Source: Vitrella brassicaformis CCMP3155 (taxonomy: Eukaryota > Protista > Chromerida). Taken from it: DNA of 64,000 bases. The notes beneath the pieces are model-generated. The model saw only the letters and a list, made by a program, of their open reading frames with translations. It did no database searches and was not told the DNA's origin. Positions 2,487 to 45,869 of the stretch are shown one piece after another; the first letter of the stretch is position 1, and every line of letters begins with the position of its first letter. The stretch is taken from NCBI GenBank assembly GCA_001179505.1, contig CDMY01000255.1, forward strand, positions 372,001 to 436,000, written 5' to 3'. The position numbers and the translations under genes are program-made.

Positions 2487-4498
2487 TTAAGATGGCTGCT
2501 CGCTGACCTGCCCGTTCTGCACAGCTGACATGGATGCCCTGAATGAATGAATCAATGAAATAAATACACACTAACAATCGCTGACCCACTGACTCGCTGG
2601 CTTTCTCGGGAGGGAGGGGACAGTCTCGTCGGGCGTTCTTCCTTCCTTCCTGCCTGCCTTGATGCCTGTCTCTGACTGACTGACCTGCATACATCCGTCG
2701 CTTCGGCATTCAAGAGCTGCTTTGGCGGGCCCTTTGCGAGCGGCGGATGGAGGCAACGAGCGTGACTTGCGCGCGGCTAGCAGGCCATAGCAGACACAGC
2801 ACACCCTCTCACCCGCACTGATGGGTCGGTGCGCCTGGGACAGCGAACAGGCCCTCACGCTGACATTCATACATACATACATACATGTGGATGCATGGAT
2901 GGGGTGCATCCAACAAGCCAAGGATAGGGAGGGAGAGAGGGGGGGAACAAAGAGACAAAGAGACAGACATGCTCTGACTGAGGCCTGTGATGAGGGAGGA
3001 AAAGGGGCTGGCTGCGTCCCTCCCTGCCTGCCTTTCTTTCGTACGTGGTATGCGTGCCATGTTCTTGGCGTGATGGCTGAGACACAGTGCCAACGAGTGC
3101 CGTCTGCGGAGTATCTGCCAGCCAGCCAGCCAAACACACAGACAGAACCCGTTGGCCCTCAAGTCAGTGACGCTTCACGTTGCCTTGCCCCTCTCTCTCC
3201 CTGTCTCACTCCCTCTCTCCCGCCCCATGTCTGTCACTCAGTCCATTGCCCCACTTGCTCCCTCACCTGTGATCCACACATTCATGCCCATCTTTCTGTG
3301 CCCATCCAGCGTCGGCCGCGCTTGATGCACCACTCTGGGATCTGCACACACACGAAACAAGGGAGGGCTTCTGTGTGTTTCAAGCCTTTCAATCGTATGG
3401 TACATACGTACGTGCATGCACTGCGTGTGTGTGTGTCCATCGCCCACCCACCCACCCAGCCAGCCAGCCAGCCTTCCCACGGCCACCCAGCCAGGTAGGT
3501 GCCTACCTGCAGTCCCGTCGGGGAATAGGTTGCTCCAGAAGAGTGCCCGGCCGCGCCGTGGATGGAACCGCTGGTTGATGAGCGGGAAATCCGTCTCACC
3601 GCCAGCCGAATCAGGCAGGGACGTCAGGTACTGACCCACACACACACACATACACACACATTGCACGTGTATGGTATGAGTCAAGTTGTAGGTAGGTGGG
3701 TAGGTACGTAGGTAGTCATGCATAGACGCTGCAAGGCCAGCCCAGCCCGCAGACCTGCCTGCCTACCACGAATGCAGTGAGGATCCTCCTGGGCTCCTCA
3801 GCAAATGCGTCGGGCATGACTACACGGATGTCAGGTGGGCTGTCCTGGAAGTCCTCGCGGCTTCTGCCCCCAGACGCGGCCCCCGGAAGCTTCAGACCTA
3901 CGGCGTCTACATCTCCCTCCAGACGACCTGCGTCATGATGAATATCGAAATACTGCATGCCATGCCATGCAACCAAACAACCAATTCACCCGCGACACAA
4001 CACAACACAGCACAACACAACACAACACAGCAAAGGGAGAAACACATTTGAATAAATGCCAAACGGGTTGTGTTGATTGAGCTGTCTGTCTGTCTGTCTG
4101 TCTGTGGCGTGGTGTGTGGTGCGTCTTTCTCGACTTACTTACCTGCCCCGGGGCGTATGAGAGGAGCTGCAGTGGCTCGACATTCTCGTGTGGCAGACCA
4201 ACGCAATCAGCCGCCCTCCTGACCACACCACACATCACACGACAGACAACAGTGTCACCTGCAGGTACCTGCAACTTGGGCTCAGTGTGTCTCTGTGTGT
4301 ACGTATGTGTGTGTGCATCGACAGTGTGCTGGTGGATGGGATGGCCGGCCCAGCACCCCAATCAATCTGTGTGCGCCCTCTCCTGTGGTTCATTCAACTG
4401 ACCTCTCAATGTTGCGGATAACGGTGCTGCCGCACTTTGGCAGGTGAGTGTAGGTGGACGTGCGGCACTCATCATACACCAACTGATGGTACATGCAT

Positions 4499-5210: not shown

Positions 5211-7499
5211 ATGGCCAAGAAGGGCGGGACAGGGGCCCACCCGCAGCCAAAAGAGGCTCCCAAGATGCCCCCTCGAGCCAAGAAGAAGGGCGGCGGCATG
5301 GGGTATGTGATGCCTGTGGTCGCAGCGGCGATTGCACTCATGGCCATCGGGGCGGCGGTGTTGTTCACCCGCTCATCGACGGGTCCAACTTCCATCCTTC
5401 CAAGGATGGGTTCGTCACGGCGGCGTGAGTCAGCGGCCGATCTGCTCAAGTCATGGAAGGATGCGCCCGTGGACAACATGCCCGACGGCCTCAAGGCCAA
5501 GCTCTCGTGCTTCAAGGAGTGCGCCGAGGAAATGACCGCCGACCAGGAGGAACGATTCAAATCAAAACTGCAGAAAACCAGCCCCCAACAGTGAGGCAGG
5601 CAGGGAGGGAGAGAGGCAGGCAGGAGGCCAGCCTTCCTCCCTATATGTTCGTCTGTGCGTTTCACCCACCCACCCACCCTTGTGTGTGTGTCAGGTACGT
5701 TGAGGTGGCAGCGTCCAACGAGCTTGATTTGCTTGCGTACGCCGACTGCCAGGCGTACTGCGAAAAGGCCGAGTTGGGGAGCCTCCTGGGTGTGTCCATC
5801 CAGGACCCCTGGGCCGACATCGCTTTGGGGCGGTTCAAGAAGCGCCAGCTCAAGGCAGACAGACTCAAGCTCCAGACGCAGCAAGCCGACAACGAGACGA
5901 CTGTCAAGGTGGTGGACTCGCAGCAGAACGAGACGGAGAATGCCATCATCAAGGGCAACCTGGACCTGTCGGCCCTCCCTGCCGACCTGGAAGAGTACCT
6001 CACCTGCGCCAAGGAGTGCACCGACATATCGAGACTCACATTCGACTTCAGCAAGGAGCCGCAGCCAACGGTAGAGGACTTGCTGCAGACCCTCCGCACC
6101 TGCGGCCTCGTGTCGCTCGTCAACTACTTCCCTTCAGCTTATGCGCGGGAGATCCACGCTGCCATCGGACAGCTCGAGAAGGCAGGCAAGGTCAACCAAA
6201 TCCCTCTCAAACACTTCCAAAACATGAACCTCTGGTGAGACAGGCGGACAGGCGGACAGACAGACAGACAGACAGACAGACAAGCGACAGGCAGGCACGA
6301 ACGGCCGCATTTTGTTTCCGTCCGTCCATCCATCCGTCCATCCGTCCGTGGTCAGGAACAACCGTTACGAGATGTGGCTGCCTTACGTGGAGCCGTTCAT
6401 GCGTCTGGCTGCCACCTTCGCCAACAGGACGGTCATCCCCCAAGTGATCAAGGGATACCTGCAGCCAGACCCACAAGGACCCGTTCTTGACTACCCCAGG
6501 TGACTGACGCACAGACACACAGACAGACAGACCGTCTCCTTGTGCTCTGTGGCTTGTCTGTCGTCAGTGCCATCTTTGCCCCTGCGCGTACGACCGGATC
6601 TCAGCCGCTGCACCGCGACACAGTGGATTCGCTGAGAAGCGAGAGGGGCGTCGGGGAGACCGTCAATGTGCAAATCGCCATACAAGACATGACACACCAA
6701 ATGGGTCGGTCAACTGGCCAGCAGGGCAGGCCCAACAGTGGCAGGCCCTTTGCGCCTGTTTGTGGCCAAGTCAAACACAGCCTGTCTGTGTATGTGCTGT
6801 CTGTGTCGTGCTGTGTGTCTGTCTGTCTCTGCAGGCCCCACTCTCTTCTGCCCATGCTCTCAGAAGTACTTGGTGAGTCAGTCAGTGCGTGAGCTGCCCT
6901 TGGAGGATAGATAGATGGACATGAAGCGAATTTAAATCGGTCGACGGCTGGCTGGCTGGCTGGCTGGTTGTGTCTGTCTGTCTGTCTGTGCGTTTAGGTG
7001 TTTGGTGACAATTACGTGACGGATGCGTTGGAGTTTTGGTTTTGGCGGTCGGCGGATGACCGCGACAACCACTGCATTGAGAGCACAGCCTTCTCGCGAG
7101 ACTTCACACCGGCAGGCGCTGTCACCGTATACGATGGCATCACTGTCCACCAAGGTGCCAGCCACGCGGGTGCATGGGGGCCGGGGGGGGGGGGGGGGGN
7201 NNNNNNNNNNNNNNNNNNNNNNNNNNNNNNNNNNNNNNNNNNNNNNNNNNNNNNNNNNNNNNNNNNNNNNNNNNNNNNNNNNNNNNNNNNNNNNNNNNNN
7301 NNNNNNNNNNNNNNNNNNNNNNNNNNNNNNNNNNNNNNNNNNNNNNNNNNNNNNNNNNNNNNNNNNNNNNNNNNNNNNNNNNNNNNNNNNNNNNNNNNNN
7401 NNNNNNNNNNNNNNNNNNNNNNNNNNNNNNNNNNNNNNNNNNNNNNNNNNNNNNNNNNNNNNNNNNNNNNNNNNNNNNNNNNNNNNNNNNNNNNNNNNN

Positions 7500-25669: not shown

Positions 25670-25814
25670 GTGCTTTGAAAGACACACGGCCCGCCTCCCA
25701 TCCCATCCTCCCGTCTCGTGTGCGTTCGCTCAGAGATGAGATATGTCAGGGGCAGCAAACACCACCTTTCGGCGAAGGAGCAGCACAGACCAGTCCAACG
25801 TCCCAGCAGGCGAG

Positions 25815-27796
25815 ATGGGGCGCTCACTACTCATGGTCCGTCTGCTGCCGACAAGCGCCCTCTCCCTCAACACTCTCTTCTGCCTCGCTGTGTTGCTGTA
25901 TGTGTTGGCCTGGGCGCTGCTGGTGCTCTACAGTGGGATGCTGTTCGGCACTGGCGGAGGTGGCGGCGGCCCAGATGACCGGGCAGCCAGGCGGACTCGG
26001 AAAGAGGCGTTTGATTCATGGTTTGAGGACATCTTGGAGCAGTGGATACCGCCATGGGCCAGCCCATCGCTCTATCAGCTGGAGGACCTCTATGTGCCAT
26101 CAGCAGGGGAGGAAGACGGTCACACACGTCACCCCTGCAGAGTGGTCATCCTGACGTCGGGCGATTTGCGCATCGACATCGACGAGCCCCTGAGGGCCAA
26201 CCGGCAGCTCTACGCAGCCCAGCATGGCTACTGCTACAAACACCTATCGTGTATCAGGGGCTCGGGGCAGCGGTGGATGAATGATAATAATGAGACGGAG
26301 AGTGAGTCCGGCGGCCGTGACAACGAGGGCGACCGCCGGCTGTGCCACTCGCCGCATTATTGGCGGTACATCGCTTTGTGGAAGCTGATGCGCAGCGGGA
26401 CGGAGTGGATTCTCTACCTTGACGGCGACGCCATGTTCACCAACTTGAACCGCACGGTCGAGGACGTTACGCGCAACCCGGCCTACGCCTCCCCCTCCAC
26501 AGCCCTGCTCGTCGGCACAGATGCCGACTGTCAGAGCCCCAAGTTCCCCCTCAACAACGGCGTGATGCTCGTGAGGGCGTCCACCTTCGCACACATGCTG
26601 GCCTACCATGTGCTGGTGCGCAAGGACTACCACCGGGCCCTCAACCACACCGACAAGTGGGGCGCCAGGGGGCTGCACGACCAGCCCATTCTGATCGAGG
26701 TGCTCGCCGAGCTGAGGGTGATCAACCCGGAGGCCATCCAGGCGGCCTGCAGCAGCGGGGCCATCGTCAACCACACGGCCAGGGGGGAGGTGCTGCACCG
26801 CGGCAGGCATGTGACGGTGCTGCCGGGCAGACTGATGAATTCCTTCAGGAGGGGCAACACATACGCCGACATGCCGGAGCTCGTCTGGCAACCTGGCGAC
26901 TGGATCGCTCACTTCACAGGTTGGCTTAACCAACCAGTGTGCCAATCCATCAGGACTTGATCTCTTCCTGATATATGTTGGTTGGTGTCGTCATTCCCTC
27001 AGGCACTGCCAACAAGGTGCGTCGTTATTTACTGCGCGAGACGTGTCACGCGTCCCACGTGGCAGGCCACCTGGCGGTGTGTCCCTTCGCACTGTCGTCC
27101 CTGCTGACCCCCGACGAGGCGGCCTCGGTCATGGAGACAGAAAGGGTGGCGCTGAGTGAGCGGCAGCTGCGGCGGGCTCACAGCCAGCGCAGCATGAGGA
27201 TACAGAGAGCAGCGGAACAGATCCGCAGCAACTCAGACAAACTGCCAGGGGCACTCGACCACCTCAGACACACAATCGACCGGTGGGTGGGTGAAAACAC
27301 ACAACCGACCGACAAGGGCCTTACTCACCTGAGTCGGAATAGGCGTCCATATCTGTCTGTCTGTATGTGTGTGTATGGTATGTAGGTACGTGACGCGTCT
27401 GCTTGAGTGTGCGGACTGGTCGATGGGTGAGGGCGATGAGGCCAGGGGCGAGGAGATGCTGGGCTACCTCGAGGAGGTCGCCCGCCAGGTGTGGCAGAAC
27501 GCATTCCAACTCGGCACTTACACACTCAAGGCCGCTCAACACACAGCAGTAACCACCGCACACTGACTGCACAACCCGACACGCAGACCACACAGTCAGT
27601 GTCTTGCGCATCCATCCATATGCTGTTCGTTGTGGATGCCACCATTCAGGAGCAGATGGTCAACATCGATCAGTGCGGAGTGCCAGATGGTGTGGAGGCC
27701 ACCACAGACCTGCCGCTGTCTGCAGACGGCAGCCGGCCGGATGAGTCCGATGCGTCTTGCCAAGTAACTGACGCCGGACAGATAGCACTGAGCTGA
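25815..27796 (+). CDS. GT34-like (GMA12/MNN10 galactosyl/xylosyltransferase) type II Golgi glycosyltransferase with a C-terminal extension
   Basis: N-terminal TM, then NRQLYAAQHGY, YW..IALW, EWILYLDGDAMFTN (DxD), LNNGVMLVR, DQ.IL, NSF and WQPGDWIAHFTG. Three further exons after 26919. Confidence 0.75.
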
Positions 27797-28299: not shown

Positions 28300-31200
28300 T
28301 CACGAGGATGCCGATGACTCGGCTGCGTCATCCTCCTCTTCCCGCGGCGGCTCGGGAGACACGCGAGCCGGTCCATCCTCCCCCGACAGGAAACCGGACC
28401 CCTCCCTCCGCTTGTAAAAAATAGTCGCCTCGCCCCTCCCACTCCACCACAAACGCGTCAAGAGCTCCCCAATGTTCTTCACTATGCCTTTTTCCTCAGG
28501 TATCGCGGCCATGATGGCGAGAACGACCAGCTCCACCAGGCACATGTCGAGCAGCAGCGAGAGGAGCAGCGACATGAGGTAGATGCGGGGTGCGGGGTCA
28601 CTGAGGGATATGTCTCTGTCCTCATTATAGAGGAACCCTGACAGCCGCACCGTTCGCTCGGGATCGCCCGGTTTGAGGGCCAGTCGGTAGAAGAGCGCCG
28701 ACCTGACTATGTCACCGTCACTGGCTTCCTCCGGCCACTCTATACTGATCTCTTTGTCGTGGTGCTCGGCCGTGAAGGTGAAGAGGACGAAGGCCATCAT
28801 ATAGAAGGCCAACAGGAAGAAGACCAGCCAAACGACCAGCTGGAGCACAAACAGGCCCTTTGCGGCCACGATGCGCTTCTCGGCAGCCTCGTCTGATGAG
28901 TAAGGAGACGGGGCGGTGGTGGTCTGGTACTTGTCTGAGGACCGTCGTCTCCTGCCCCCCTTTTTTCTGGCCCTCCTCTTGTTCATCTGTCTCGTGCAGT
29001 AGGCGATGGCAGAGGTGATAAATAGGGGAAAGAGCCTTGGCGGCTCCAGGAACATCTCGATATAGAGGGCTTCCGTGTCTTCCTCTTTGATGCCATGCCG
29101 CTCCACGAAGGCCTCAAATGGGAGGGGGACCCACAGACCGTACGAGGGCAGGAGGGAGATAAGGCTGACAAACATGGACGTGATGAAAATCTGAAACACG
29201 TCCCATCCACTCCACATGTGGTCTTCACTAGCACACTTCCATGTGCTGTCGACCACCCCGCTGCACCGCCCCTCCCGCCCCTCGAATGTGCCGGCGGATA
29301 AGAACGTCATGCCGGGGAGGAAGAGGATTGACACCGCTGCGGTGTGGGAGAACACACGCAGGAACAGCAAGACCGCCTTCGTGTGCTTGGCCCAGGCATA
29401 AGTGCCCGAGTCGTGGGTCAGGCACAATAAGGAATGGAACTCCCGTATGTGTTCGTTGAATCGAGACAGATACCGTCCTGCCGCTGTCTTGGGCTCTCGG
29501 TCAGCATCCTCAGCCTCATCCGACTCCTCTCCATGTGCCTCCTCGTCGCTGGCCGCTTTTTGTTCCCCCGCCCGGCTGACAGCCATTGGCTGCCCCTGCC
29601 ATGTTGAGTACAGAAACTGCGGCTGCGACCCGACAGTGTAGCCCATCATAGGCGCAGAGGCAAAGGAGGGGCTGGTGGCTGCCAATGCCATTGTGGGGGA
29701 GCCCGAAGGCGTCCGAGAATCGCTGTCTCTGCTGTCGCTCAACCTGGCGTCATCGATCGCCATCGGTGGGGGGCTGAAGTGCCGTGCGTCATCAACTCGC
29801 TCATGCGGTGGAGGCAGTCTCTGAGCACCGCGAATGGGCGGCAGACGTGTCTGACGTCGTGTCGTTTGTATGAAGGCACTCTCACGAAGGGGCGCACGCT
29901 GCTGCTGCTGCTGCTGTTGTTCATCTTCCTCTTCCTCAGGTGGTGTGGGGGGCGGCTCGACTTCATCATCGGCCACCGATATGGCCTCGTCCATGTCACT
30001 GTCCTCCTCATCGTGGTCCATCTCGCCCACCACCGGTATCCACAGGGAGTCCTCGAGCGTCACCTGCCCCTCATCGCGCGACTGCATGCCCAAGGCCACC
30101 TGTGCCTGGTAGGGCAGCCCGCTGAAAGATGCTGCTGTTGACGATGCAGTGCCGGTGCGGGGAGGGCCCTCAGACACTACTATGGCACCCATCTGAGGGA
30201 CGGCTGGATCGGAGACACGGTGGCTGCCAGGGAATGGGTGCTGCGGGAATGAACTCGGTGAGACGGGCATAGTGGCGTGCAGGGGGGGCCCCATTTGGCT
30301 GGGGAGTGCGTAGGCAACAGGCTGAGAAAGCGGTGCCTTCAGCAAGAGCTCCGAAGCGGGCGGGGGCGGGAATGCTGTCGGGTCGGAGAAAGCACCATCT
30401 CGCAGCTAAACAGCATGTCAGCATGCATTGTTTAAGGAGGCATGCAATGCATGGGTATGTAATGAGCGGCTTTCCTCTTGTTCCCTGGCTGTGCTGGCGT
30501 GCTGTTTCCTTACCTTGCTGGCTTCCTTTTCTGCGCCCTCTACGGCTTGTGTGGCTTGATCGTCGAGCTTGGCCAGCTTGAGCTTCGTCCGCCGCCGCTC
30601 ACTCAAATCCGCCCACCAACCCAACACAATTGACGACAGCGCAAAACACAGCAGACCTATCGAGCTCGATACAAGGAGACGCACCACACCCGTGGATGGA
30701 TTCACGACTGCCTGGCCGACATACGTAAGTACAGGCACCTGTGGCGAGGTAGGCGCCCATAGCGTTGCCTGGCTCGAGTCGGGCCATCCACCACACCTTC
30801 CGCTCATGCACGATGGGCTTCGGTAGGGGCGGAGGGGGAAGAGGTGCGCGAGGCACAGGCAGCATGCTCATGGTGGGAGCCCACTGCATCGTCGCGTTTG
30901 CTGCGGTGGTCAGCAGAGGGCACGTGCACGACACTTTGACGCCCGTGACGGTGTCGTTGCCTCCACTGTTGGCGAGGAGCTCGGTGATGGTGGTGGGCTG
31001 GCAGCCATGCTCGAAGGCGTAGCGCCACTGCTCATGGCCGGGGTCCCACACTACACAGACATAGGAGCTGACATAGGTCGAGTTGAAGCAGACGGCAGAC
31101 GGCTTCTGGAATGTGTCGCTCTCGTCGCATGCAGGGATGGTGTGGGTGAGGGTGATGGTTGCCCCGTCACTGGTCGAAGAGTTGAGTTCGCGAGCGACAA

Positions 31201-34200
31201 GAGCGGCCATTCTCTCCTCTGTGCTCGCATTAGCTCGATACACCTGGATATAGACAGAGGGGACACGGCAGACTCAGGCGTACATCGCTGATCTCGCTCC
31301 TTCACCTGTATGCCCAGGGATGGTGTGCCCGTGACGGCGGCTCGATGACTCCACTGGGACCACTCAACGCCAGGCTTCCCCATCCAGGCCACAAACGAGC
31401 AGTCAGTACAGCTTAAGGCCCCACTAGAAGGAGCTGCAGCACTATACTGCAGCCGACTTGTCGACACGGCCCCTGCTGCTGATCCAGGGTGGCTGCCCGA
31501 TGTCTCCCATGATACCACGGCCTCACCAGAGACCGACAGAGAGAAGGAGCCCACCAAGCCGAGGGAGCCCGACGTCTCTAGTGTTTCCACCGTGTTGGGC
31601 TTTGCTGTCTGCAGCGAGGCCTTGGCCATGAGCATCTCCTGAATGAATTGCAGGTGTCGGCTCATCTTGGCGGCAGCCTTGCGGGAGACGACAGGAAGCT
31701 CTCGGTCCCCCCATCTGAGTGTACTCGTCAGCAGCATGGACGTGTCTGGCTCGCTGACGGCAGAGGGATTGCCCCATTGGGGGGGCAGCCACCAGCCGGG
31801 CAGAAAGGAGGGCGCACTGCTCGAGGCGGGGCTCCTCTGCAGCCTCCTCCGTGAGAAAGTGGCCCCCGTAAGGACATCCGCCAAGTAGAAGGGGAACGGG
31901 GAGGGGACGACAAAGGATGGAGGGATCCCACACGGACACTCGCCCAGGAATGCGGGGGCTCCTTCAGTTGACGAGTTGAGAACGATCATCTTGCGGAGAT
32001 TGCTGGGGGGCTGAAAGCGATCCGGACTCACTTTCTTGATGCTGAGTTTGGCCTCGACATTCGACAGATCGGCTGCAGTGTACACGTGGGCAAACGAGGA
32101 GGGAAATTCGAAAGTACAAGTGGTCACTGGTTGCTGTTTCCCGGTGTCATTTGGTGGTGGTGGGGTTGTGCATGAGACGTTGGCCTTGAGATAAGTGGGG
32201 TCCCAGCAGAGATAGGATGGAGGCTCACCGGCTTGTTGCTCCACATAGTATAGGCAGAACGGGCGGGTGTTGTCATGGACCAGGGCATTGTAAGGTCCCT
32301 CCTCCCCTTCCACCAGCGCCGAGGCCTCATCCGGTGGGATGGGCGGCAGCAGAGACACGATACCTTCTGTCATGTTGAGCACTGTCTCGAGGGCCGGCCC
32401 GCTTAGGGAAGATGCAGAGCTTTCCAGGACAATAACGCCCAGGAAGTCAGTAGCGACTGCGAGAATTCCCTCCGACAGCCGAGAGCTGTCGCTCAGGACA
32501 TGCCTGAGGACCTGCAGATGCAGCTCAATGTAGGCCGATGACAGGGGAACCAGCGAGGCAGCTGCCGCAGCGTCAGTAAACAAGGTCTCCGCCATGCCCA
32601 GGATGTACTCGGCCATCTCTTGCTGCAGAAGCCGCTGGCTGGCCATGCGATCGCACGCTACGCCCTCCCAGCCAGCGTCACACACACATCGGTCGGTGTC
32701 TTGTTTGGTCACATAGATGAGCTGTTGTTCGATGACCTCCACTGTACCATCCCTGTTGACCCTCGTCAGCGTCACTCGAGGGGAGAAGTCCACACTCGAG
32801 GCATCGACTGTACGGGCCACGAGCCGCAGCTCCTGAACGAGTCGCACGTTGGGACACCGGCCATGTTCACCGCAGTGCTCGCTGCAGTTGAAGGAAAAAT
32901 CGCTTGGCTGCGTGCGGTCCGGCCAGAGTGCCGCCAGAGCCACCTCCTGCAAAGCCTGCAAGACGGCAGACGGGCCGGAAGCACGAAGACGGTCGATGCT
33001 CTCCTTGATTTTATCGAACTCGGCAGGGAGTGAGACGGGCTGCGAAGCGGGGACGGCAGATTGTTGGTAGTCGAGGGGTAGAGCGGCGAGCCAGGGGTGG
33101 AGGGTGGGCCCCGTGCTCTCAAGAAACGACACATTATGGGTGGCTGATGTGGTCACTGAGCCCAGCCAATCCGACACGACCGCCCTAACGCTGAAGCACA
33201 CACAAAGCCCAAAGGCATGTACATCAGTCAGCGACACAATCCATCCGGTCCTCACCCAATCTTTCCACGTCTCGGATAGAGAAGCGCTTTCAGGTGAGGC
33301 ACATACATCCAATCCGACAGCAACACGAAGTCCTCGTCCGTGTCTGACGCAGTAGTGCGGGCTGTGGTGTTGGCTTCCGTCACATTGGGGGACACCTCGT
33401 TGGGTGCGGCATCGATGAACGGATAGAAATCCCTGTGGCGCGTCTCAAGGAAGGGCTGGTACTCAAATCTGTAGGCAAGTGGCAGATGGTCGGCACTCCA
33501 CCCCCTAAGGTCGAAGTCCGCCTCCCAAAGCCCAAAGGTGGCTGCCTTCTCCATTGCTCTCACAGACAAGCTCCCTCCCCCTGGTGGAGACGACGCCTCG
33601 ATCAGCTGGTCCGCGGTGACCTTAAGCAGCGTGCTGTCGGGATTGACGGCAGGGTGCTGCCAGTCGAGGCCTAGAGTGAGAGTCAGACGAAAATTCAGGA
33701 CAACGCCTGGCAGCAGCAGCAGTGGCGGCACGTGGATGAAGAGAGAAGAAGACTTGGAGGACAGGTCAACGGTGGCGTTTGAAAGGGTAGCATTGACACT
33801 TTTCGACCGTGATGGTGTGTCTTGGACTGGCCAAAACTGATCAGCTCTCTCGAAAGGGGTGCCCACGCTCCACTCGACCTCATACGCATAGATGGTCTCC
33901 CCCTCCATCTCCAACGGTCTCGCCACATACTGGAAATCGCGCGTCGTCGAGGCTGCACCGGCCGCAGGCGACGCCGTCCCGTTGGTCCTCTGATTCAGTT
34001 GCGCGGCCAGCACGAAGCCAAAGCCCTCTGGCACCGTCACCACCGTTTTTGCACCTCCAGATGTGTCGATGATTGTCTTGGTTGGTGCGTGCTGGTATGC
34101 CGATGGCAGCCCTTCCCCCCTGTCGTAGCTGAGGGAGTCAGCCACGCGCAGAGGTGGCACCTGGTGGAGGGCTGGGACATGTCTCGGGCTGTCAGGCTGC

Positions 34201-37200
34201 AGAATTGTCATAATGCTCGCCTCTACTGCGGATGGCTCCAGCGTGCCTGCAAAGAAAGGAGTAGTCCATCAAGAGGGAAAGACCTTTATCCTCTGGTGCA
34301 GTTCACTGAAAGAGTGAGCGCCTTGGAGAATCCTCCTGCTGATCGTTGCATCGGCAGCGTCCAGTGGGGCGAGCTGAGTCTCTCGCACCTTGACGGTAAA
34401 TGCCTTCTTGCCGCAAAGACCGGCATTCAAACAGGCTGTGGCAGTGAAAACATAAGTGCCAGGCACAAGCTTGTTTGCAGGAATGAACAGTCGTCTTGAT
34501 TTGTCTCCCTCGGTCAGATAATCAGCCATATGGATCGGCTGAGAGTCGTTTGTTCCCGTCCATTCTAACGAGGGGCTCTTGCTGAACAAGGCCGTCACCT
34601 CGGCTGGCGGCAGCTGACGGAGACCCGTGCAGCCATATGAGATCAGCACCTCTATCTCCAACAGCAGGGGGTCGCCCTCCGAAAGTGTTATAGCCGGTGG
34701 CTGAAACCCATGGACGACTGGCACTGGGGCTTCATTCGGCAGAATCTGCATCGAGTGGCGGGTGCTGGCACTCTGGCCCAGGACGTCGGTGATGGTGAGC
34801 TCGAAGGTATAGAGGAAGCCCGACGTTAGTGGAGGGGGCAGCATGCCTGTGCCCCACCACTCGGCCGACGCCACGAAGGAGAGAATGGAGCCGTTGACAA
34901 GCTGAGGACTGTTTGAATACACAGTCTGCAGCCGCAGGAGCTCGGCTGATGCTGCCGCTGGTGTCTGTGTCTCGAGCGCATTCACGTCATGCACTCTCCA
35001 TTTATACTGAAACACAACACCGAAAGGACACCAGTTGGCCATCCAAAGACACACTTATCTTATATGTACCATTATCGGCCACGTGGGAAGCCCAGGGATT
35101 GTGGAATAGGCACCGGACAGATCCGCACCCATACACCGAGATATCGCACCCGGCCCTGAGATTATCGCTCTGAGAGGGATCTGGGGCGTGCCTGCTTCCA
35201 CCGTGACATTCTGAGCCTCATTTGCCGACCCTAGGGAGAAATTAGCACCTTAGTAGCAGTCATGCACCGATGATGCCATACAACCCGCTTACCCGGCGCG
35301 AATCGGTATCGCCTTATCGCACCTTCTTCGATGGCCAGCACTGAGCCAGGTCTTACAGTCGCCCCTTCGGCAACCACAATCCGGGCTGTGCCGGGACTGT
35401 CGAACGAGCATGACGCCTGTCCGGCTCTCATATCCCCATTGGTAGCTTCGAGAAGCCGCAAAGGCTCTGCACCAAACAGCGACTGGCAGGGGAAGACCCG
35501 CTTGGTGGTCGGGGGCCCGCCCGTTGACGCGACGCCCCCGATGACCACCGGATTTGGCGAGAACGAGAGGGAGATGGCGGCAAACGAGGGTGAGAATGTG
35601 GCGGATACCACCCTTGAAGGGACGGCCTCGACGCATATCGAACTGTATGCACAGAAACACACGTACGCTCCGGTTGGTTGATTGGACTGCCATGTCATTT
35701 GTGTGTGACCTGGGTAGCGGGTAGTTTGGGGCATCGACTGATGGGCTGACTCGGAAGCAGTAGAAGTCATCTTCGATGCCACATGTGACATTGCACCCGT
35801 CCCCACTTAGCAAGTTGCCTACATCAGAACATGGTTCAGTGACGTTGGAGCATACACACACACACTCTCTTGTCTGTTTGATCAAGCTTTGCACCGTCGT
35901 CACATTGCTCCATAGCCTCGACCAGGATAGAGTCCCCGCAGACAGTTGAGCACTCAGAAAGCTCACCAGACGACGCAGGCGGCCTGGTACACTCATACCC
36001 CTTCTCGATCTTGCACCCTGAATCACATCCATCCCCCGAACTCGTATCGCCGTCATCACACTCCTCCGACGGCTGGACGATGCCATCGGAGCACCGCGAC
36101 ACTCCTTCGTATCGACATGATTGACAGCTCTCTGTTGATCCTGTTGTGTTGGACGTCTCGCACTCCTCATGTGCATCCAGCCGTCCGTTGCCGCATGTCG
36201 ATTGGCAAATTGAAGGCTTGGGCCCATATGGGCTGTCTACTATCGCTTGGGCAAGATTCAGGTCCACTGAGGGAGGCAACCCCCCATCAGATCCCGACTC
36301 CCGCTGACTCCACAGTTCGACGCTCTCTGACATCGCAATGAGAGCCGTGACGTTGCTGAGATATTCCGAGCGGTTGACGGGTGGCAACGGCGCTCCTCTG
36401 GTGCAGTGGTAGCCTGGTTGTGTCTTGCCGTTGAGGCATCCGAGCGAGAGTGGGTCAGCAGAGGGCATAACAAGAGGCAGAATGGCGGCGAAGAGGGCTC
36501 CCGTGTCACATGTCTCCCCTCCTGTCTCATAGCCATCCCCAAAGATGGGCGAACACACAGACGGCTTGCCCCCCTGGTGACACACAGCAATATACATAAC
36601 AGGAGACGATGAAGCAACAGGATACTCCGTGGATGCCTGTGCATTCGTGGCGTGATGGCCCCACCATTTCTTCGCGTCTATCGCATGAAAAGGTGCTTTC
36701 CACGATACACGTCTTGCTGCAGCCGTCACTGGCCCACGCGTTCCCATCGTCGCTGTAAGAACGAGAAGAGGCAGAGTACATGATTTGCCAAAAGGGCGTC
36801 TGGCTCTTCTTTCGACCATTCTTCCCCCAGTGGGTGGACAGTCCCATCACCACAGTGTGGCCTGCAAACGGATATCGGCCGCTTGGCGGCTTGTTGTACT
36901 TGGACCTGGTCCTGTCTGGCTGAGAGTGTTTCGTTGATGAGGACGAAGGCGTCGTCTGTGCTCCCCGCTTGAGCAGTGGATGTCTCGTTGGCTGCAGGGC
37001 CGGTCACTTGCAGGAACGTTAGCGGTCCCTGCTCCATCCCTTCAAAGCTTAGCTCACACAGCCAGCCCTCCTCAATAAGGCACTGTGAGCTGCAGCCGTC
37101 ACCATCTACCAGATTGCCTACAGACAGAGAGGAAGAGAGTCCGTGTAGTTCCACGTCGTGGTCGTTTCTCATGACAGGTACAGTACCATCGTCACAGCTT

Positions 37201-40200
37201 TCCTCTTCCTGGACAAAGATGCCGTCGCCACACACCGCTCGGCACTCAGTTGTGCCGTTGATGGGCTCGATCAAGCACATGTAGCCAGTGAGGATCATGC
37301 AAACCCCTGCGTCACACCCCGTCGGCAGCGACGGGGGCATGCCGGATGGGAAGGGAGTGATGCCGTGTGTTGTCCAGTTGAAGACTCCACTGCCGGCAGG
37401 TGTTGATCCTTCACCGAGGCCGATGAGAGGGATGTCGCATTGCTGCACGGCAGAAAGGACGGGCTGAATGCAAGTGCAAACATCTTCTTTAAGTGCTCGC
37501 TCACACCTCATTGCCAACAACAAGACCATCGCCGCAGACCTCTTGGCATACGTCAGTGGATAGGGCAGAGCCTCCGGCACATTCATAGCCTTCTTCCACA
37601 GTGCACTTGGCACTGCACCCTCTCTGCTCGATCCCACCTGGCACATTGATGTATATTGGAATTCACTCTGACGTACTATTCGGCTCACCTGTGTCACAGT
37701 GTTCGTCGCCGACTCTGAGGCCGTCGTTGCATACCGGCAGACACATGCCGGGGCCAGTGACGCTTTGATGGCACTCCCACCCTCTTGCTATTCTGCAGTC
37801 TGAACAGCCACCGCCTGAGAGGGGCACAGCCAGGGGTCGTAAACGGGGTCCTCTCGACGACAACTCTGTTTGTATGCGGTACGTACCATGGGACTGGTTC
37901 CCCAGGTCGCATTCCTCATTGTCGGATTTGAAGGCGTCGCCACATTCGGCTGCGCACTCCTGCTTGCACCTGCAAATGATGGCCCGGTCTGGAGTCGACA
38001 AAGGAACGCCTTCAGGTACAAAGCACTCGCGAGGGCACGCACACTGGAATCCCTGCTCGATCCGACACCGATCATCGCATCCGTCCGCAGCCAGTAGATT
38101 GCCTACATGCATACAATCACAAGAGGGGTCCGTCCGTCGGCGACGCTTCAGCGTCCTTGACCATCATCGCATTGCTCATGCGGCGACTCCAGCACGCCAT
38201 TCCCACACGTCGAGGGACACTTGAGCGGCTCCCCCGGCGACCTCAAGGAGCATTCGGAAGGCCCCTTGATGAGGGGCAGCTGGACGCCGGGCGTGAGGGT
38301 GAGGCGATCCACTGATGGCGAGTTGGCGAGCTCTTCGCGCATTCTCTTGTATACCGCGGCGGCTGATGGGTCTAGACTTGCGGGGCAGCACTCGTACGAT
38401 TCCTCAACAAGACATGAAGGGGAGCAGCCATCGCCGCCGCTGAGACACACGAAAGATGCTCCAAGTATGTCCAGATGCGGAACCTGTTGCCTCATCCCTT
38501 ACACGATATTCATGTCATCGCAACTCTCCCCTCCAGCTGTGTAGCCGTCCCCGCAGATGGGAAAGCATGTCGACCGTCTTGCTTCCGTCATGATGTCGAT
38601 GGCACATTCCCAGAAGGGCTCGATGGTACAACTCGACGAGCAGCCCTGTAGGACAAGCGCTGCAGAAGGAGGGTGGATTACTTGACGCTTGTTCACCTTA
38701 CGTCATCGTTGTGTGTGTTGCCGTCATCGCTAGAAAGGGACGACAGGAAGAAACGTGAGTCGGTGTCACCATATTTGTGCACAAGATTTGCTCTCTCGCC
38801 TGCCTCACCACTCTTCCAATCCCAGCTTGCGACCATCGCCACAGATGGGGACGCAAGGCTGCCCCTCCCCCACTTCAGCCCTCATTGGACACACCCAGCC
38901 TTCTTCAACAGTGCAATTGGGGTAGGCACATCCATCCGCAGACCTCGTGTCGCCGTCACACTGATGAAAAAGGAGATCAGACAGCATCCAATAATTCTTT
39001 GGGTGCATGTCTCAGCAAGCAGCTCGTGATATCACTTGCTCGGTGTCCTTGATCATCATGTCTCCGCACAGGGGGTGGCAGACCGACAGACTGATTGCGG
39101 GCCCACCACCCTCGGGCAGAGTGTCTGAGGTGGCTGAGTCTTCATGGCAAAAGTAACCTCTCTCAATCTCGCAGAAGACGCTACAGCCATCGCCATTCAC
39201 CAGGTTTCCTACATGGGAAAACAGCGAAAGTACGTCAACAGGAACGGCGATCTTGTCTTACCATCATCACACTGTTGTCCCACAAATGTCCCTGAACCTG
39301 AGTAGGCAGTCAAATAGTAGGGACGACAGTGGTATCTGTACATGAGAAACGCATCTATTGTGGTTCATTGATCTGCTTTCTTTCGTGATACCGGTTGCTG
39401 CTCCGCCCCTTCGTTCTGGCATCCGAATCCCGTCAGAGCACTCGGGCACGCACATGTCCGGCTGATATTGTCGATGGGCCCACTTCTCAACGCCAGCAGG
39501 CACCCGTGGCCGATAGCAGCTGAGCGAGAAAACAAAGACAGAGCGAAGGCGGATATCTGATGAGTTAGGCGAAGTTCTGTTTCCTACGTGAAGCCCTTCT
39601 CAATCTGACAGGTCCGGCTACACCCGTCGCCGGAGAGGGTATTGGAATCATCGCACTATGTCACCAAGCAGACAGATACAGAGGTCTAAGAGTGAGGCAG
39701 AAGTGGCCTAGGTGTGTTCTCACTTGTTCTAGGGGCTTGATAAGCAGAGAGTCCCCGCATTTGGGCAAGCAGAGGTCAGGCTGTCCCGTCTTGGCGCGGC
39801 TGAAACACTCCCACCCCTCCTCTACTTGGCAGACTTCATTGCATCCGTCCCCTCCGATCAAGTCTCCGTCATCACAGGCCTGTGTCCACAGGATCTAGGT
39901 GGCAAACTACTTCGGGCAGATTGAGTGCACTGACCTCATGCGCAGGGACACGATATCCATCTGAGCAATTCGGGATGCACGCCGAACCATTGATGCCGAG
40001 GACTTCATCGCACAGCCAGCCCTTTTCGATGCGGCAAAGGTGGTCGCAGCCGTCGTTTGGGTTTAGATTACCTGCAATACATCAAGCGGGACACCGTAAG
40101 TGTGAGAGCGTCTCCCTCTAAGCGCCGTCGAAGCCTTACCATCATCACACTCCTCAAGGCCGTAGGGATTCAGTTTGCCGTCCCCGCAAGCCTCCCGCAG

Positions 40201-43200
40201 ACACAGCTCGACGCCGTTCCTCATCTCCTCCAGATTGGTCTTGTTCACTCTCAAATCACCGATAGCGCTCTGCGCATCCGCAGGGTACTGCTTCAGCCGC
40301 ACACAGACCCAGCCGGGAGCCACTTTGCACTCTCTTGTGCATCCGTCATTATTGTTGATGTTGGCGTCATCACATCTGGGCAGCGACAAGCAAAGAACTT
40401 GACGGGGCAGATGTCCGAACATTCACTCCTTACTCTTCGCCTCCAAAGCGGAAGCCGTCTGGACACGTGGCTTGGCACTCACTTGTGAAGCTCTCCAATG
40501 ATGGACTCCAGACGTCCTTGCACGTGAATCCGAAACGTGTCTCGATGGTGCAGTTGGACGAACAGCCGTCTCCGTCGATCAGGTTGCCTGCAAATCAGAC
40601 ACAGATTCGTCATTGCATAGCTCGGCAATTCGTATCCCTGAGCTGCCCCTTCGCATGAGAGATTGACCATCGTCACACTCCTCGCGTCTGTATGCTTCGA
40701 GATGGATGCTGTTCGTCTCATTGACCGTCTCGTCAATGTAGATATACACGTCTGATGAGCAGACAAACACATTCGTGGATGGACAGACAAGAAAGCGGCC
40801 TTCTTTGCGGTATACACACGTCCGTCGCCTGCACATACAACGACAAGGTGGCGGATGCAACGACATTGGCCGCTACAGTCAAAGTCGTTGGCATGAGGTG
40901 CACGCACCGCAGTCAATGTTGCAATCATCGTGTCCAGACGGGCCAGGCGAGCACGAATAGAACTTCTCCACCAATCCATGATTGTCACAACCATCGTTCT
41001 CGAGCCTGTTCATATCGTCGCACTCCTCAGAGCCCACACGGATCTAAAATTAAACACATGCGTGGCAAATGACAGATGCGTGTGAGGCGCGTGACGCGTG
41101 TGAGGCGGGCTGTAATGTTCGTTCATCTTCTCTGACCCACCCCGTCTCCGTGGATGGGGCTGCAGTACAAGTACTGCGTGATATTGTCAGGGGCATTCCA
41201 ACGAAGGCCACACGTCCAACCTGTCTCTATCTCACACCAACTGTTGCACCCATCTCCTACCAAAAGAATATACAATGGACAAGCATCCAGGGGAAGGAAT
41301 CGCCTCACCTGGCTGGATGTTTGCGTCGTCGCACCCCTCGCTCTCTTCTCTGATGCCATCGCCGCACAAACCAACCGTCCTCGCCACAAATACATCCGAG
41401 GGGGGCGATTGGCCCGTGCTCGTCTGAACTGACAGTCGTAGGCCGTAACTCGTCGATGATCGGAGATTTGGCAAGATCAAATGAGTGTCGAATCCGCTGA
41501 GTGTCATTGTTCTGCTTGGCAGCTCAGCCCAATTTGTGCCAAGTCCACGAGCATCTTCATAGACTTCCAACAACATCTCCAAGACGGGCAACCCGCCGGA
41601 CAGGGTCGGACGATATGTCACGTTGAGTGCCAGAGAGGTCGAATAGGCCTTGCGAAGCGCGAAAGAGGTCAGGGGAGGCTTTGATGGGGCCATGAATCGC
41701 GTCGTAAAGTCTGCATACGAGAGCGCTACGGGATTGCCGTAATAGTCTTGATATGAAAGCCGGATGCGATAGCGAGTGCCGTCTCTCAGGTACCCAGTAA
41801 AGGGAGCAAGGATGGGCTCTGTTGTGACCGCATGAGTGACCTTTGACGTCGGTTGCTGACTCGCGGTGCGGAGTAGCGGGTGGGGCGCCATTGATGGGCT
41901 CGAAGGGTCAAGGAAAAGGTCATTCACCAGTAGCTGCATGTGAGTAGAGGAGCGATGACGTGCATCGCGCTTTCACCAATGTTTTTTTCACCTCAATCGT
42001 TTTCCACACGCCATATTCTTCCATCTTGGGCACAACCGTGAAGGAATATGGGGCGATAGGATCTCTGGCGCCCTGATCCCACTCAACCATCTCTGAAAGC
42101 GGCAAATGAGAATGACATGTCACACAAATGGCCAGTCATTCTTGCTTTCCTTGCCGTCGTGCCTTCAATATCGACGAGGAGCGACCCAGCTTTCGCGGGC
42201 TCGGGGATGCGATAGGAGATGCTGAGCGGCTGAGACACGGGAAGCGAGTCGACCTGGAGTTGAGCCGACTCGGTAAATCGATCGATCCAATGGAACAGAT
42301 CGTATACATAGGTGCTATTCGCCTCATTGCCATCGGCATCTTGTGCTTGCAGTTCCAAATCATAGGAAGCACCATCCACGAGGCCGATCGATGCTCCATC
42401 GCTGCTGTTGAAATCGTCGACCAACAGCGGACCACCTCGATGTATCTGCGCTGGCAAGTATGGCGATACGTTGCTGTCGATGCTTCGGCTTAGGTTGGAC
42501 GCCGTAAGCAGCAGGTCATGTGGCCCCTGCTGGCAGCCCTCCCAACTCAGCCTCAAGTAGTAGGGCGCGCCAGTGTCGTTGACGGGAGAGGACGGAGAGA
42601 GGGATAATATCAGGAAGGCAGTCCACTCCGCCATTGCCTCAGGCAGGTGATAGCGTAGGTTAATTTCTTGATGCAGCCAGGACCCGTTGTGGAGGCTGAC
42701 CAGCTCGGGGGCCTCCGTATAGTTGTCCTGCCTGAGGGTGAGCCGTGTCGCCGTGACATTGGCCTGCTCGTGATCAAACACATCTTGATAAGACACGATG
42801 AGATCGTAGATGGCGCCTTCTAGCAGACGGTGGTGGAAGTCAGTGTCCTCCAGCGGCACGGGGAGGGAGCCATTGGAGGATATCGATGTGAACAGGGGGC
42901 TGGCCGAGTCCGTCATGAACGGATGCCAGTGCTGGGACATATTGACTGAGTTGATATAGACCCTGCAGACGGAAACGGAGCAGAAGAGAAAAAAGATATC
43001 GGGGTCTCTCACGTGTCACACTTTTCTTTCTGTCCACTGACACGAAGCTGCCCGCTCTTGCGAAGTCCGCATTGACAGTGAGGATGTGGGGCGTGTCGGG
43101 ATCGGTCACAAGCCTGATCTCGTCTGAGAAGACGTCTAAAGGGGCATTGACGAGCGTGATCGTCACTGTGTTGTGAGATGGCCACTCGGGCAGCACAACC

Positions 43201-44473
43201 TCAATGGCCAGCCGCTGCGAAACGTCTGTGTTTGGCGCTGGAACGTGAATGACCTGCCCACCCAGACAAGTCGAGGGGGGTAGCTGTCGAGCCATTCCAT
43301 CGCCTTACTTACCGGCTCCATGGTCGACTCATCAGTGGGAATCTTTGATATCTCCTCATACACTGGACCCCCTCCCCAGCACGTGGCATTCCCATCTGTA
43401 TCCAGTCCACAGATGAACGACCCCCCGGCAGCCACATCCTTGGTCTTTAAGGGGGGCGTATCACACTGGCCGTTGTCATTGGAACCCCAGCAGTGCGTCA
43501 TTGCTAGGCTATCGATGCCACAGCAATGAAACGATCCGCAAGACACCTAAAAGGAGGGGGGAGGGGGCAGGGAAGAGAAGATAGGCTTGTTTTCTCCACC
43601 AAAGGCACCCGCTGACCTTGTCCCAGAATACTGTGTCTTGATTGTCTTGGTATATATCGCCGAGAACGGGCGGTGTCGTTTGCCCAAATGCCTGCAAGCC
43701 CCAACATGTGACCTGTGCAGCATCCAGGACGGCACAGCAGACGTCCTCGTAACAGCTCAAATCACTCCAGCTGTCCACGGCTGCCAAGGCAGGAGGGCTC
43801 GTGCGGGCGTCGGGGACGCCCCAACATACCAACACCTGAACAAAAGGAACCCAAATGCGCCAAGAGCGCTTCGTGCAATCAAGATTCTATCTACCTTGGT
43901 GAGTGTGGATGCGCATGTGTGGTACGTGCCAGCAGCAATGAGGTCGTATCTCCCCTGATAAGAAGGGGGGACGCTGCTCTGCCGGTTGGAGTTGTCACCA
44001 AAGCAATAAACATGGTTCAAATTCGTCACGCCACATGAATGGAAGCCGCCGGCCGTCAGCGAAGTGAAATGCTCGTTCTTCGCCAGGTCCTGTGTCGGAA
44101 CGTCCAGCTGCCCCTCACTGCCTCTCCCCCAGCAGTGTGCCGTCGGCAGTGCAGAGCCCAGGGTCAGCAGATCATCTTGCAGTGCAAGCGTTGGCACGGA
44201 CGGGAAGCCGCTGCCCGGCCCTGCTTGGGTAACGCCGCATGCGTGGAACGGTCCGGCCGACAGCTGGGAGAAGAGGAAGCCCACTGGAGGCATCGTGCGG
44301 CCAGTGAGGTCTTGGCCGCCATGCCATCCCACAGCAGTGCCGTGCGGGGCGGCAATAGCCAGACAGTAGTCATCTCCACAGTCGATGTGGTCGAAGTGAA
44401 TAGTAACCGAGGCAGCGGGCATCGCAAAGCTCATCAGAAACGTCCACACACGCCTCCACCGCGACATTTTCAT
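28300..44473 (-). CDS. Giant multi-domain surface receptor (polycystin-1/REJ-GPS family-like): signal peptide, RCC1/BLIP-II-like repeats, Ig-like and FN3 modules, about 20 Myxococcus-type Cys-rich repeats, REJ, EGF, GAIN/GPS and about 6 TM
   Basis: Consecutive minus-strand ORFs join in frame through short GT-AG introns (e.g. STLTK|VLVCWG, FWDK|VSCGSFH, GKIG|VRAVVSDWLGS, EASK|LRDG). Motifs: SAGPFHACG, CWGSNDNGQ, CGDG..EECDDGN..GDGC, PPGGGSLSV..GW..PLAYRFEY, CVCDAGWEGVAC, CVVWD..W..GC..CTC. Confidence 0.75.
35750..41375 (-). repeat. Coding array of about 20 Cys-rich repeats (CG[D/N]G..EECDDGN..GDGC..C..E.G[W/Y].C; Myxococcus cysteine-rich/DUF4215-like)
   Basis: Repeated units such as CGDGIREESEGCDD, CGDGKLNPYGLEECDDG, CGDSLLIKPLEQCDD, CGDGYTAGGESCDD, CGNGVLESPHEQCDDG, CGDGIFVQEEESCDDG and CSDGIVQPSEECDDGDTSSGDGC. 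Confidence 0.85.
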
Positions 44474-45388: not shown

Positions 45389-45869
45389 TCAAGTGCTGCC
45401 GCCCGGGAGAGCCTCATCAACTAACAGGCCGTTGGTGTCGTCTGTTGGTGGTGGCGCTGCTGACTCGAACCTGACGTCAGCGAAGCCGAGATCAGGTGAC
45501 ACCGTGCTGGAGGTGTAGTATTCCCCATAGCCGGCCTCGTATGGCTCGTAGGTGGTGCTGGTGTCGGTGCCATAGCCAGCTTCATCGTATGGCTCGTAGG
45601 TGGTGCTGGTGTCGGTGCCATAGCCAGCTTCATTGTATGGCTCGTAGGTGGTGGTGACGGGACCGACTTGGAGGCCTCGCAAAGATGGAGCCTGCAAGGG
45701 AACGGCATATGAACGGCACACCCAATGAGACACGAAGAGCCACGCATGTGGCGCATTCATGGCACAAGATTTGCTGACGCATCACCTGCATGTCGTCTGC
45801 GGCAGCTAGGGGGGTGAGGACGGCCACGAGGCAGAGGGCCACGCACACGAACATCGACACGCCGGACAT
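45389..45869 (-). CDS. Small secreted acidic Tyr/Thr-rich repeat protein (exons 45869-45786 and 45691-45389)
   Basis: Signal peptide MSGVSMFVCVALCLVAVLTPLAAA; phase-0 GT-AG intron; then APSLRGLQ and the TTYEPY(N/D)EAGYGTDTS repeats. Confidence 0.65.
45519..45652. repeat. 48-bp coding tandem repeat, about 2.8 copies
   Basis: Unit gtatggctcgtaggtggtgctggtgtcggtgccatagccagcttcat(c/t) repeats from 45539 and encodes 16 aa on the minus strand. Confidence 0.9.

Follow-up and report, generated by a model that had tools for sequence, protein, structure and literature searches.

Whether one giant cell-surface receptor is encoded on the minus strand of this Vitrella window (the whole 64-kb stretch of DNA that was analyzed), and to which receptor family such a protein could be assigned, are the questions raised by positions 44473 to 28300. 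A sequence-only reading had proposed a single spliceable, in-frame gene of 4,000+ aa, and the gene model, domain, and homologue searches reported here bear this out. In our view the protein is best explained, with a probability of about 0.6, as a large plasma-membrane receptor for adhesion or sensing that belongs with polycystin-1-like protist proteins without a channel, a family with a common REJ-EGF-GAIN/GPS-five-TM base and exchangeable outer modules. The surface adhesion or sensing role suggested earlier we take as right.

Gene model and splice control

The frame runs from an ATG at 44473 to a stop codon at 28300, with a CDS of 13,551 nt and zero internal stops (Table 1); another in-frame stop lies 45 nt 5' of the ATG. 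Introns are 51 to 108 nt long (median, 68 nt), with GT-AG borders in 37 and GC-AG in one (at 42162). Twenty-five of them fall inside the Cys repeats, mostly within the short CGDG/EECDDGN/DGDGC core, and their removal restores the repeat consensus. A first automatic splice model was dropped at five junctions, where the consensus was lost. There is uncertainty at four junctions (39391-39298, a 9-nt exon at 40828-40820, 36664-36574, and 34306-34247), with the frame intact at each.

As a control, a path search that used splice signals only was compared with the plus strand and with eight Markov controls. The path on the gene strand reached a score of 358; it used 32 introns, left 86% of the sequence exonic, and recovered 26 of the 38 curated introns. 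The plus strand scored -3, and the Markov controls scored -71 to +8 and needed 51 to 59 poor introns. As judged from these sequence signals, 44473..28300 is a single gene for a cell-surface receptor of ~4,500 residues in this single-celled alga.

That the splice model alone has joined two or more separate genes (e.g., one for a secreted protein with propeller and Cys repeats and another for a REJ-GPS-5TM receptor), or the pieces of a gene in partial decay, is very improbable. Several donors or acceptors are weak, and the product was absent from protein libraries in an exact look-up of two ORFs, both of which would suit separate genes, but no noncoding gap exceeds 108 nt, none of the internal ATGs heads a signal peptide, and Cys repeat 21 runs without break into the REJ part. 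Each of the three ectodomain parts is enriched in sequons for N-glycosylation (47 versus 18.8 +/- 4.0 on shuffling), and the REJ-GPS half is itself sequon enriched (19 versus 6.8 expected) yet has no signal peptide of its own. The splice control, a GC3 of 0.67, and the lack of any frameshift likewise argue against separate genes or decay. No paralogue was found elsewhere in the 64-kb window.

Table 1. Features of the gene and its predicted product
Feature	Position	Strand	Basis or remark
Complete gene model	28300..44473	-	39 exons/38 introns, 4,516 aa; splice-signal control
Probable signal peptide, aa 1-22	44408..44473	-	Basic n-region; hydrophobic core short, weak
Seven-blade CRINKLY4/BLIP-II-type (RCC1-like) propeller, aa ~26-330	43355..44398	-	Exons 1-3; RCC1_2, ACR4/BLIP-II matches
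Three related ~150-aa repeats, aa 345-797	41694..43253	-	Probably beta-rich; internal similarity
A single fibronectin type III (FN3) domain, aa ~796-903	41370..41693	-	Pfam fn3 match under the cut-off (E 1e-3)
21 Myxococcus cysteine-rich (DUF4215/TIGR02232) repeats, aa 905-2240	35633..41366	-	Profile matches, repeat alignment
REJ-like module, aa ~2241-2995 (limits approximate)	33118..35632	-	Atlas features; weak PKD/Ig hints
EGF-like domain split by ~50-aa insert, aa 3073-3152	32647..32886	-	Pfam EGF_Teneurin match under the cut-off (E 3e-4)
Presumed GAIN region, aa ~3153-3724	30869..32646	-	Inferred: lies between EGF and GPS motif
GPS-like motif	30869..31060	-	C3662, W3665, W3672, C3680, C3705, C3707, L3709-L3710-T3711
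TM1, aa ~3760-3782	30613..30763	-	Spans intron 37; basic stretch after
Pro-rich acidic low-complexity cytosolic loop, ~340 aa	29479..30612	-	Sits where polycystin-1 has PLAT
TM2, aa 4159-4179	29314..29376	-	Amphipathic motif directly before
TM3, aa 4216-4240	29131..29205	-	Short TM2-TM3 loop has two Cys
TM4, aa 4330-4353	28792..28863	-	Polybasic cytosolic loop before
TM5, aa 4423-4450	28501..28584	-	Hydrophobic segment
66-aa cytosolic tail + stop codon	28300..28500	-	Topology

Propeller tip and Cys-repeat stalk

Domain and homologue searches were made exon by exon. The signal peptide proposed earlier was recovered as a probable one, weakened by its short hydrophobic core. Behind it lies the propeller, which matched Pfam RCC1_2 (E values of 2e-14 and 2e-10) and, in the PDB, ACR4 (7A0J; E 2e-17) best and BLIP-II (E 5e-14) as well; a homologue search with the propeller piece returned only three RCC1-like proteins, at 28 to 45% identity. 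In CRINKLY4/ACR4 the extracellular propeller is RCC1-like, with seven blades of the form C(x~10)CWG, and Cys-rich sequence follows further on. These crinkly repeats are present here, with C-x9-C-[WF]-G in five blades and a sixth blade in which an insert splits the motif. One Cys pair per blade, the mark of the extracellular CRINKLY4 propellers, is also found, whereas the seven-blade propeller of Streptomyces BLIP-II has no blade disulfides. ACR4 as best match and the blade Cys pairs confirm the CRINKLY4-type tip of the sequence-only reading; a cytosolic RCC1 GEF was rejected on account of the blade disulfides and the sequons. The gene is not a CRINKLY4 receptor kinase, since the TNFR-like Cys domain, single TM helix, and cytosolic kinase are missing. 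It has five TM helices versus one, and the propeller sits ~3,400 residues away from the membrane.

The domain order that had been read from the letters holds as a whole, except for Ig: residues 345 to 797 had no Ig or other match in Pfam/NCBIfam and consist of three related repeats without an assigned fold. Their internal similarity was matched or beaten by 0, 11, and 20 of 1000 shuffles, and a single-sequence AlphaFold model of the segment reached a pLDDT of 31.

About 20 Myxococcus Cys repeats had been counted earlier, and we found 21. Profile searches placed them above the family cut-off (DUF4215, E 2e-13; TIGR02232, E 6e-18); most have six Cys each, and 15 of the 21 keep the full acidic core. 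The repeat sequence also matches PAPP-A/A2, in the M3 domain of PAPP-A, which holds two Ca2+ ions (PMC9579167). Because of this match, the stalk probably binds Ca2+, and the earlier suggestion of a disulfide-rich, possibly Ca-binding stalk gains in strength.

The same six-Cys acidic repeat occurs in bacterial DUF4215 arrays of 20 to 70 copies, in Myxococcota and others. Long stalks of this kind are common there, with up to 73 copies in surface proteins that have no REJ/GPS/TM base, and a diatom adhesive-trail protein carries DUF4215 repeats as well. These cases favor a structural tether, or a wall or adhesive anchor without signaling, in which the tip would glue, the stalk span, and the helices only anchor. 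Further points for such a tether are the GPS, which is probably catalytically dead (see below), and the finding that Pfam detected no known enzyme or signaling domain inside the cell. For a plain anchor, however, one helix or GPI is enough; REJ, the GPS-like motif, the five helices, and the cytosolic loop of 340 aa would all be superfluous, and we regard this alternative as unlikely. A prokaryotic origin of propeller and stalk as a unit was rejected: among 99 repeat-bearing ORFs from 80 prokaryotic loci (a small sample), none had a propeller, REJ, GPS, or this five-TM unit.

Membrane-proximal base

For the REJ part, all 30 of 30 Atlas hits were REJ clusters (0.93; 197 shared features; recognition value low), and Pfam REJ, searched exon by exon, gave no match, with weak PKD/Ig hints only. 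This language-model evidence lends moderate support to the REJ module as a feature shared with polycystin-1. Homologue searches found no sequence relatives of the REJ, GAIN, or TM parts. A search with exon 36 (targets 0.55 to 1.75 times query length) was blank, exon 35 gave one chance match, to an unrelated acidic repeat protein, among 1.84 billion representatives, and a PDB search with the GPS exon had no relevant match.

In the GPS-like motif, two Trp and four Cys are spaced as in a GPS, and the only Pfam match of this part, under the cut-off, was GPS (E 3.1). Cleavage follows a rule of His at -2, Leu at -1, and Thr/Ser at +1, and loss of the His abolishes it (PMC13197933). Here the Thr is kept at +1 (T3711), and Leu replaces the catalytic His at -2 (L3709), so self-cleavage is unlikely and, going by these residues, the receptor probably cannot cut itself. 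The mechanosensory role proposed earlier stands insofar as adhesion or sensing is concerned, but the usual GAIN mechanosensor route is weakened by the missing His.

The multi-TM C terminus of the sequence-only reading resolves into five helices. Its loops fit a positive-inside pattern, which leaves the TM1-TM2 loop and the tail cytosolic, and 7TM and 11TM topologies were rejected, as there are only five hydrophobic segments; 7tm had no Pfam match, and the stop codon follows 66 aa after TM5. In Atlas the TM region was closest to unnamed diatom/ciliate clusters (0.90 to 0.91), with PLAT, at most a lead, as the nearest named cluster at 0.76 (low recognition value). Pfam found no domain in the low-complexity TM1-TM2 loop, and PLAT/LH2 is absent. 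A homologue search with the TM part (0.55 to 1.75 times query length) was blank, and a PDB search with the TM exons gave no relevant match. A metagenome scan and a plasmid tblastn were blank. A single-sequence AlphaFold model of the TM unit had a pLDDT of 48, and fold searches returned only generic helical hairpins. The amphipathic motif before TM2 is reminiscent of the one that precedes TM2 in polycystin-1.

Comparison with known receptor families

Although it resembles adhesion or sensing receptors, the protein is a member of none of the polycystin-1, adhesion GPCR, and CRINKLY4 families. With polycystin-1, PKDREJ, and suREJ it shares a giant ectodomain, REJ, a GPS-like motif before TM1, and a large cytosolic TM1-TM2 loop, and its five helices have the topology of the N-terminal TM unit of polycystin-1, to which they may be akin. 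It differs from polycystin-1 in having no PLAT/LH2, no six-helix TRPP-like part, a short tail, a GPS without His, and a tip without LRR, C-lectin, or PKD repeats. Polycystin-1 joins PKD2 through its six channel-type helices and PLAT. The earlier label of polycystin-1-type receptor was too strong for a protein with no PLAT, five rather than eleven TM helices, and no channel part. Adhesion GPCRs likewise have a long modular ectodomain and a membrane-near GPS-like motif, but here the helices number five and not seven, GPS and TM1 lie ~45 residues apart, and there is no H-L/T site. In alveolate CRMP proteins the Cys repeats are of the GCC2/GCC3 type and the TM domain has nine helices, in contrast to the DUF4215 repeats and five TM helices found here.

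A true polycystin-1-type subunit that gates Ca2+ entry with a TRPP/PKD2-like channel, or a GAIN mechanosensor that cleaves itself and bears a tethered agonist, is quite improbable. The REJ-GPS-TM order is the same, the Thr at +1 is kept, TRP-domain proteins are listed for Vitrella (PMC4501334), and noncleaved GAIN domains still unfold under force (PMC13197933); against this, the six channel-type helices, PLAT, and the His at -2 are all missing.

The 2015 catalogue of chromerid surface proteins (Woo et al. 2015, Suppl. file 5; PMC4501334) gives domain lists and no function. It lists Myxococcus repeat + GPS proteins for both Chromera and Vitrella, and REJ + GPS proteins for Vitrella. Of the listed ids Cvel_3369, Vbra_1225, and Vbra_4910, Vbra_1225 has PAN-apple instead of a propeller, and the domain table holds no RCC1/crinkly domain (PMC4501334). 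The present gene may itself be among the listed ids, e.g., Vbra_1446. The novelty claimed earlier is consequently smaller: in the literature we found no account of all these parts together with a crinkly propeller, but Myxococcus + GPS and REJ + GPS proteins were already on record, and bacteria commonly have long DUF4215 stalks. What is new here is the crinkly propeller tip and the GPS without its catalytic His.

Proposed mechanism and significance

For the channel-less receptor that we favor, we propose the following course. The first step is well supported: directed by the signal peptide, ~3,750 residues enter the secretory pathway to be glycosylated and disulfide bonded, and the five helices keep the long loop and tail in the cytosol. 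By homology to PAPP-A M3, the 21 Cys repeats would each fold around disulfides and Ca2+ and build a stiff spacer of roughly tens of nanometers. The CRINKLY4-type tip may bind a large ligand presented by another cell or by a surface (gamete, host, or substrate). Since the GPS has no catalytic His, the chain would stay whole, and binding or pull would travel via REJ and GAIN to reach the unit of five helices; this would signal via a partner or via proteins on the disordered loop and not through a pore of its own.

A bolder extension of this receptor reading, to which we give rather low odds, is that the alga maintains a set of polycystin-like receptors that lack a channel and whose tips can be exchanged. 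This member would have, on a Ca2+-stiffened stalk, a ligand-binding propeller of the CRINKLY4 type, a module studied to date in plants only, and would signal without cleavage, G protein, kinase, or pore, by way of an undescribed five-helix unit. On the same reading, that unit could represent the N-terminal membrane half of polycystin-1 in its ancestral form.

For the present, the gene adds a further member to a large family of shuffled proteins. If its base is the front half of polycystin-1 without the channel, nature has supplied a way to test REJ, GAIN, and TM1-5 on their own, and a noncleaving member set beside cleaving sisters would test whether GPS cleavage is needed. The disulfide-type crinkly propeller in an alveolate shows an orphan plant receptor module in wider use and may help to find its class of ligand.

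Two other kinds of non-animal REJ-type surface protein bear comparison, and for neither has a propeller tip or a DUF4215 stalk been reported: Ectocarpus Esi0130_0068, a male-gamete protein with REJ, GPS, and 6 to 7 predicted TM helices (PMC4700764), and the Cryptosporidium GGC proteins of the male-gamete surface (10.64898/2026.10.13.757955). Since REJ-type proteins act in gamete contact in both organisms, the family becomes a candidate for a role in recognition among free-living apicomplexan relatives, and we speculate that the present receptor may, for example, serve gamete or host recognition.

Gene model and neighboring features

The window has a GC content of about 57% and carries eukaryotic genes with short introns. 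A single in-frame, spliceable minus-strand gene of roughly 4,000 or more amino acids had been proposed from a sequence-only reading, and our model, built by a splice-path search with five junctions corrected by hand, bears this out, giving a 4,516-aa frame with no internal stop. Its introns measure 51 to 108 nt (37 GT-AG and one GC-AG) and have 50% GC; GC3 of the gene is 0.67. A path based on splice signals only scored 358 on the real strand, where it placed 32 introns, 26 of them as in the curated model, and left 86% of the sequence exonic; the opposite strand scored -3, and eight Markov controls scored -71 to +8. No non-coding gap large enough to hold a gene boundary was found within the model. 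A real gene encoding one chain is well supported, and division of the region into separate genes is highly improbable. Microsatellites are scarce in the introns (0.75 per kb, versus 4.2 and 2.2 per kb in the flanks as a whole).

Features of the window and the receptor gene
Feature	Window position	Strand	Details
N-run assembly gap flanked by G homopolymers, distant from receptor gene	7200-7499		300 nt
Membrane-anchored glycosyltransferase-like gene, downstream of receptor gene	25743-26960	plus	Intron-less, 405 aa; Pfam GT34 narrowly misses the cut-off (E 2e-4)
Receptor gene model (ATG to stop)	44473..28300	minus	39 exons, 38 introns, 13,551 coding nt, 4,516 aa
Weak signal peptide and seven propeller blades		minus	Exons 1-3
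Three related ~150-aa units	41694-43253	minus	Residues 345-797; internal similarity
Sole GC-AG intron of receptor model	42093-42162	minus	
21 DUF4215/TIGR02232 repeats	35633-41366	minus	Residues 905-2240; profile matches and repeat consensus
Small gene just upstream of receptor gene	45389-45869	minus	Two exons

The small upstream gene encodes a clear signal peptide followed by about 2.5 copies of a 48-nt unit (Thr/Tyr/Glu/Gly-rich); it had no Pfam match, and its product looks like a secreted repeat peptide.

Extracellular tip, neck, and stalk

Database searches, run per exon, matched Pfam RCC1_2 in the propeller exons (E values of 2e-14 and 2e-10), and the closest solved structures were Arabidopsis ACR4 (7A0J, E 2e-17), BLIP-II (5e-14), and Physcomitrella CR4. 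The sequence C-x9-C-[WF]-G is intact in five blades and interrupted by an insert in a sixth. This type of blade signature is the crinkly motif (PMC4617170), and disulfides in the blades set CRINKLY4 propellers apart from BLIP-II and UVR8 (10.1101/2020.08.10.245050). Because ACR4 is the top structure match and the motif and blade cysteines are present, the tip, judged from its sequence, is an extracellular crinkly-type propeller, as the suggestion of a CRINKLY4-like ectodomain had anticipated. The blade cysteines and the sequons speak against a cytosolic RCC1 identity. In CR4, a putative groove on the propeller could accommodate a large ligand (10.1101/2020.08.10.245050).

The ~150-aa units of the neck share two short motifs, and their pairwise scores were reached by 0, 11, and 20 of 1000 shuffles. 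They matched no Pfam or NCBIfam family and no plasmid or metagenome sequence, and possibly represent an unnamed extracellular domain. The single FN3 domain that follows (Pfam fn3 E 1e-3, below cut-off) preserves half of the earlier Ig/FN3 label; to name the ~150-aa units Ig is a guess.

About 20 Myxococcus Cys repeats had been expected in the stalk, close to the number counted; most have six cysteines, and 15 retain the acidic core. Twenty-five introns lie in these repeats, mostly within the short core motif, and their excision restores the repeat consensus. They recur at the same few positions (seven directly after CDD, in phase 1), which suggests that units already containing introns were duplicated as the stalk lengthened. 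A 9-nt micro-exon (40828-40820) contributes to one CGDG motif. Among the repeats, one aligns with residues 935-988 of pappalysin-1 and also with pappalysin-2; the pappalysin-1 segment overlaps PAPP-A domain M3 (944-995), which holds two Ca2+ ions by cryo-EM (PMC9579167), so the Ca2+ binding proposed earlier is supported by homology.

Membrane base and proposed function

In exon 35, all 30 matches in the Atlas, which scores language-model feature similarity to protein clusters, were REJ clusters (0.93, 197 features; recognition value low), and Pfam REJ had no match in the exon-by-exon scan. A split EGF follows (Pfam E 3e-4, below cut-off). The spacing of four Cys and two Trp in exon 37 is that of a GPS, which is also the exon's sole, weak Pfam match (E 3.1); five hydrophobic helices come next. 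This agrees in outline with the proposed base of REJ, EGF, a presumed GAIN, a GPS-like motif, and multiple TM helices. The GPS-like site reads L3709-L3710-T3711, lacking His at -2. In GAIN proteins, loss of this His abolishes cleavage (PMC13197933), and we predict that the GPS is dead.

Three features support an N-out/C-in topology: sequons are in excess before TM1 (47 versus 18.8 expected), basic segments follow TM1 and lie between TM3 and TM4, and the loop joining TM2 to TM3 contains two Cys. Sequons are absent after TM1, which is not significant by itself. The low-complexity TM1-TM2 loop (about 340-370 aa) contained no PLAT by Pfam, and no channel half, 7TM, or kinase was found in the product by Pfam or hydrophobic-segment count. 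The TM region is closest to unnamed diatom and ciliate Atlas clusters (0.90-0.91); a PLAT-bearing cluster at 0.76 is a lead only. A PDB sequence search gave no match that would support homology of the five helices to polycystin-1 TM1-5, and per-exon searches found no sequence relatives of the REJ, GAIN, and TM parts.

One secreted chain, with its modules and topology, is demonstrated or well supported, and we postulate, at a probability of about 0.6, that it is an uncleaved adhesion or sensing receptor. The propeller would bind ligand at the end of a Ca2+-stiffened spacer, and binding or pull would pass via REJ/GAIN to the five-helix unit, which may signal through partners. A plain tether is unlikely; a channel subunit or self-cleaving sensor, set beside the missing channel half and the altered GPS site, is less likely still.

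Relation to known systems

The layout resembles those of polycystin-1 and adhesion GPCRs, but the receptor lacks defining features of both (PLAT and the channel half in the former; 7TM, with five helices instead, and His at -2 in the latter), so assignment as a polycystin-1-type receptor does not hold in the strict sense. With CRINKLY4, it shares the propeller alone. Among the proteins listed by Woo et al. (2015), Cvel_3369 and Vbra_1225 pair GPS with Myxococcus repeats, and Vbra_4910 pairs it with REJ; their table has no RCC1-type domain (PMC4501334, Suppl. file 5). The gene is a real, well-built, domain-shuffled member of a catalogued, functionally unstudied family. The combination as a whole had been called undescribed, and literature searches found no account of it. 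Two of its pairings were already catalogued, and what is new is the crinkly tip, with a 21-repeat stalk (Ca2+ by homology) on a REJ/GPS/five-TM base and a putatively dead GPS. Among related observations, Ectocarpus has a REJ-GPS multi-pass protein of male gametes (PMC4700764), and REJ-like proteins are also known from Cryptosporidium gametes (10.64898/2026.10.13.757955).

Long DUF4215 arrays are not unusual: a diatom adhesive protein has twelve repeats, and ORFs with up to 73 copies occur among 80 prokaryotic loci, none of which combines the repeats with a propeller or the receptor's membrane base in one ORF. At L080, from a myxobacterial MAG (Sandaracinaceae), RCC1/BLIP-II-type propeller ORFs adjoin a 17-repeat DUF4215 ORF in separate reading frames.
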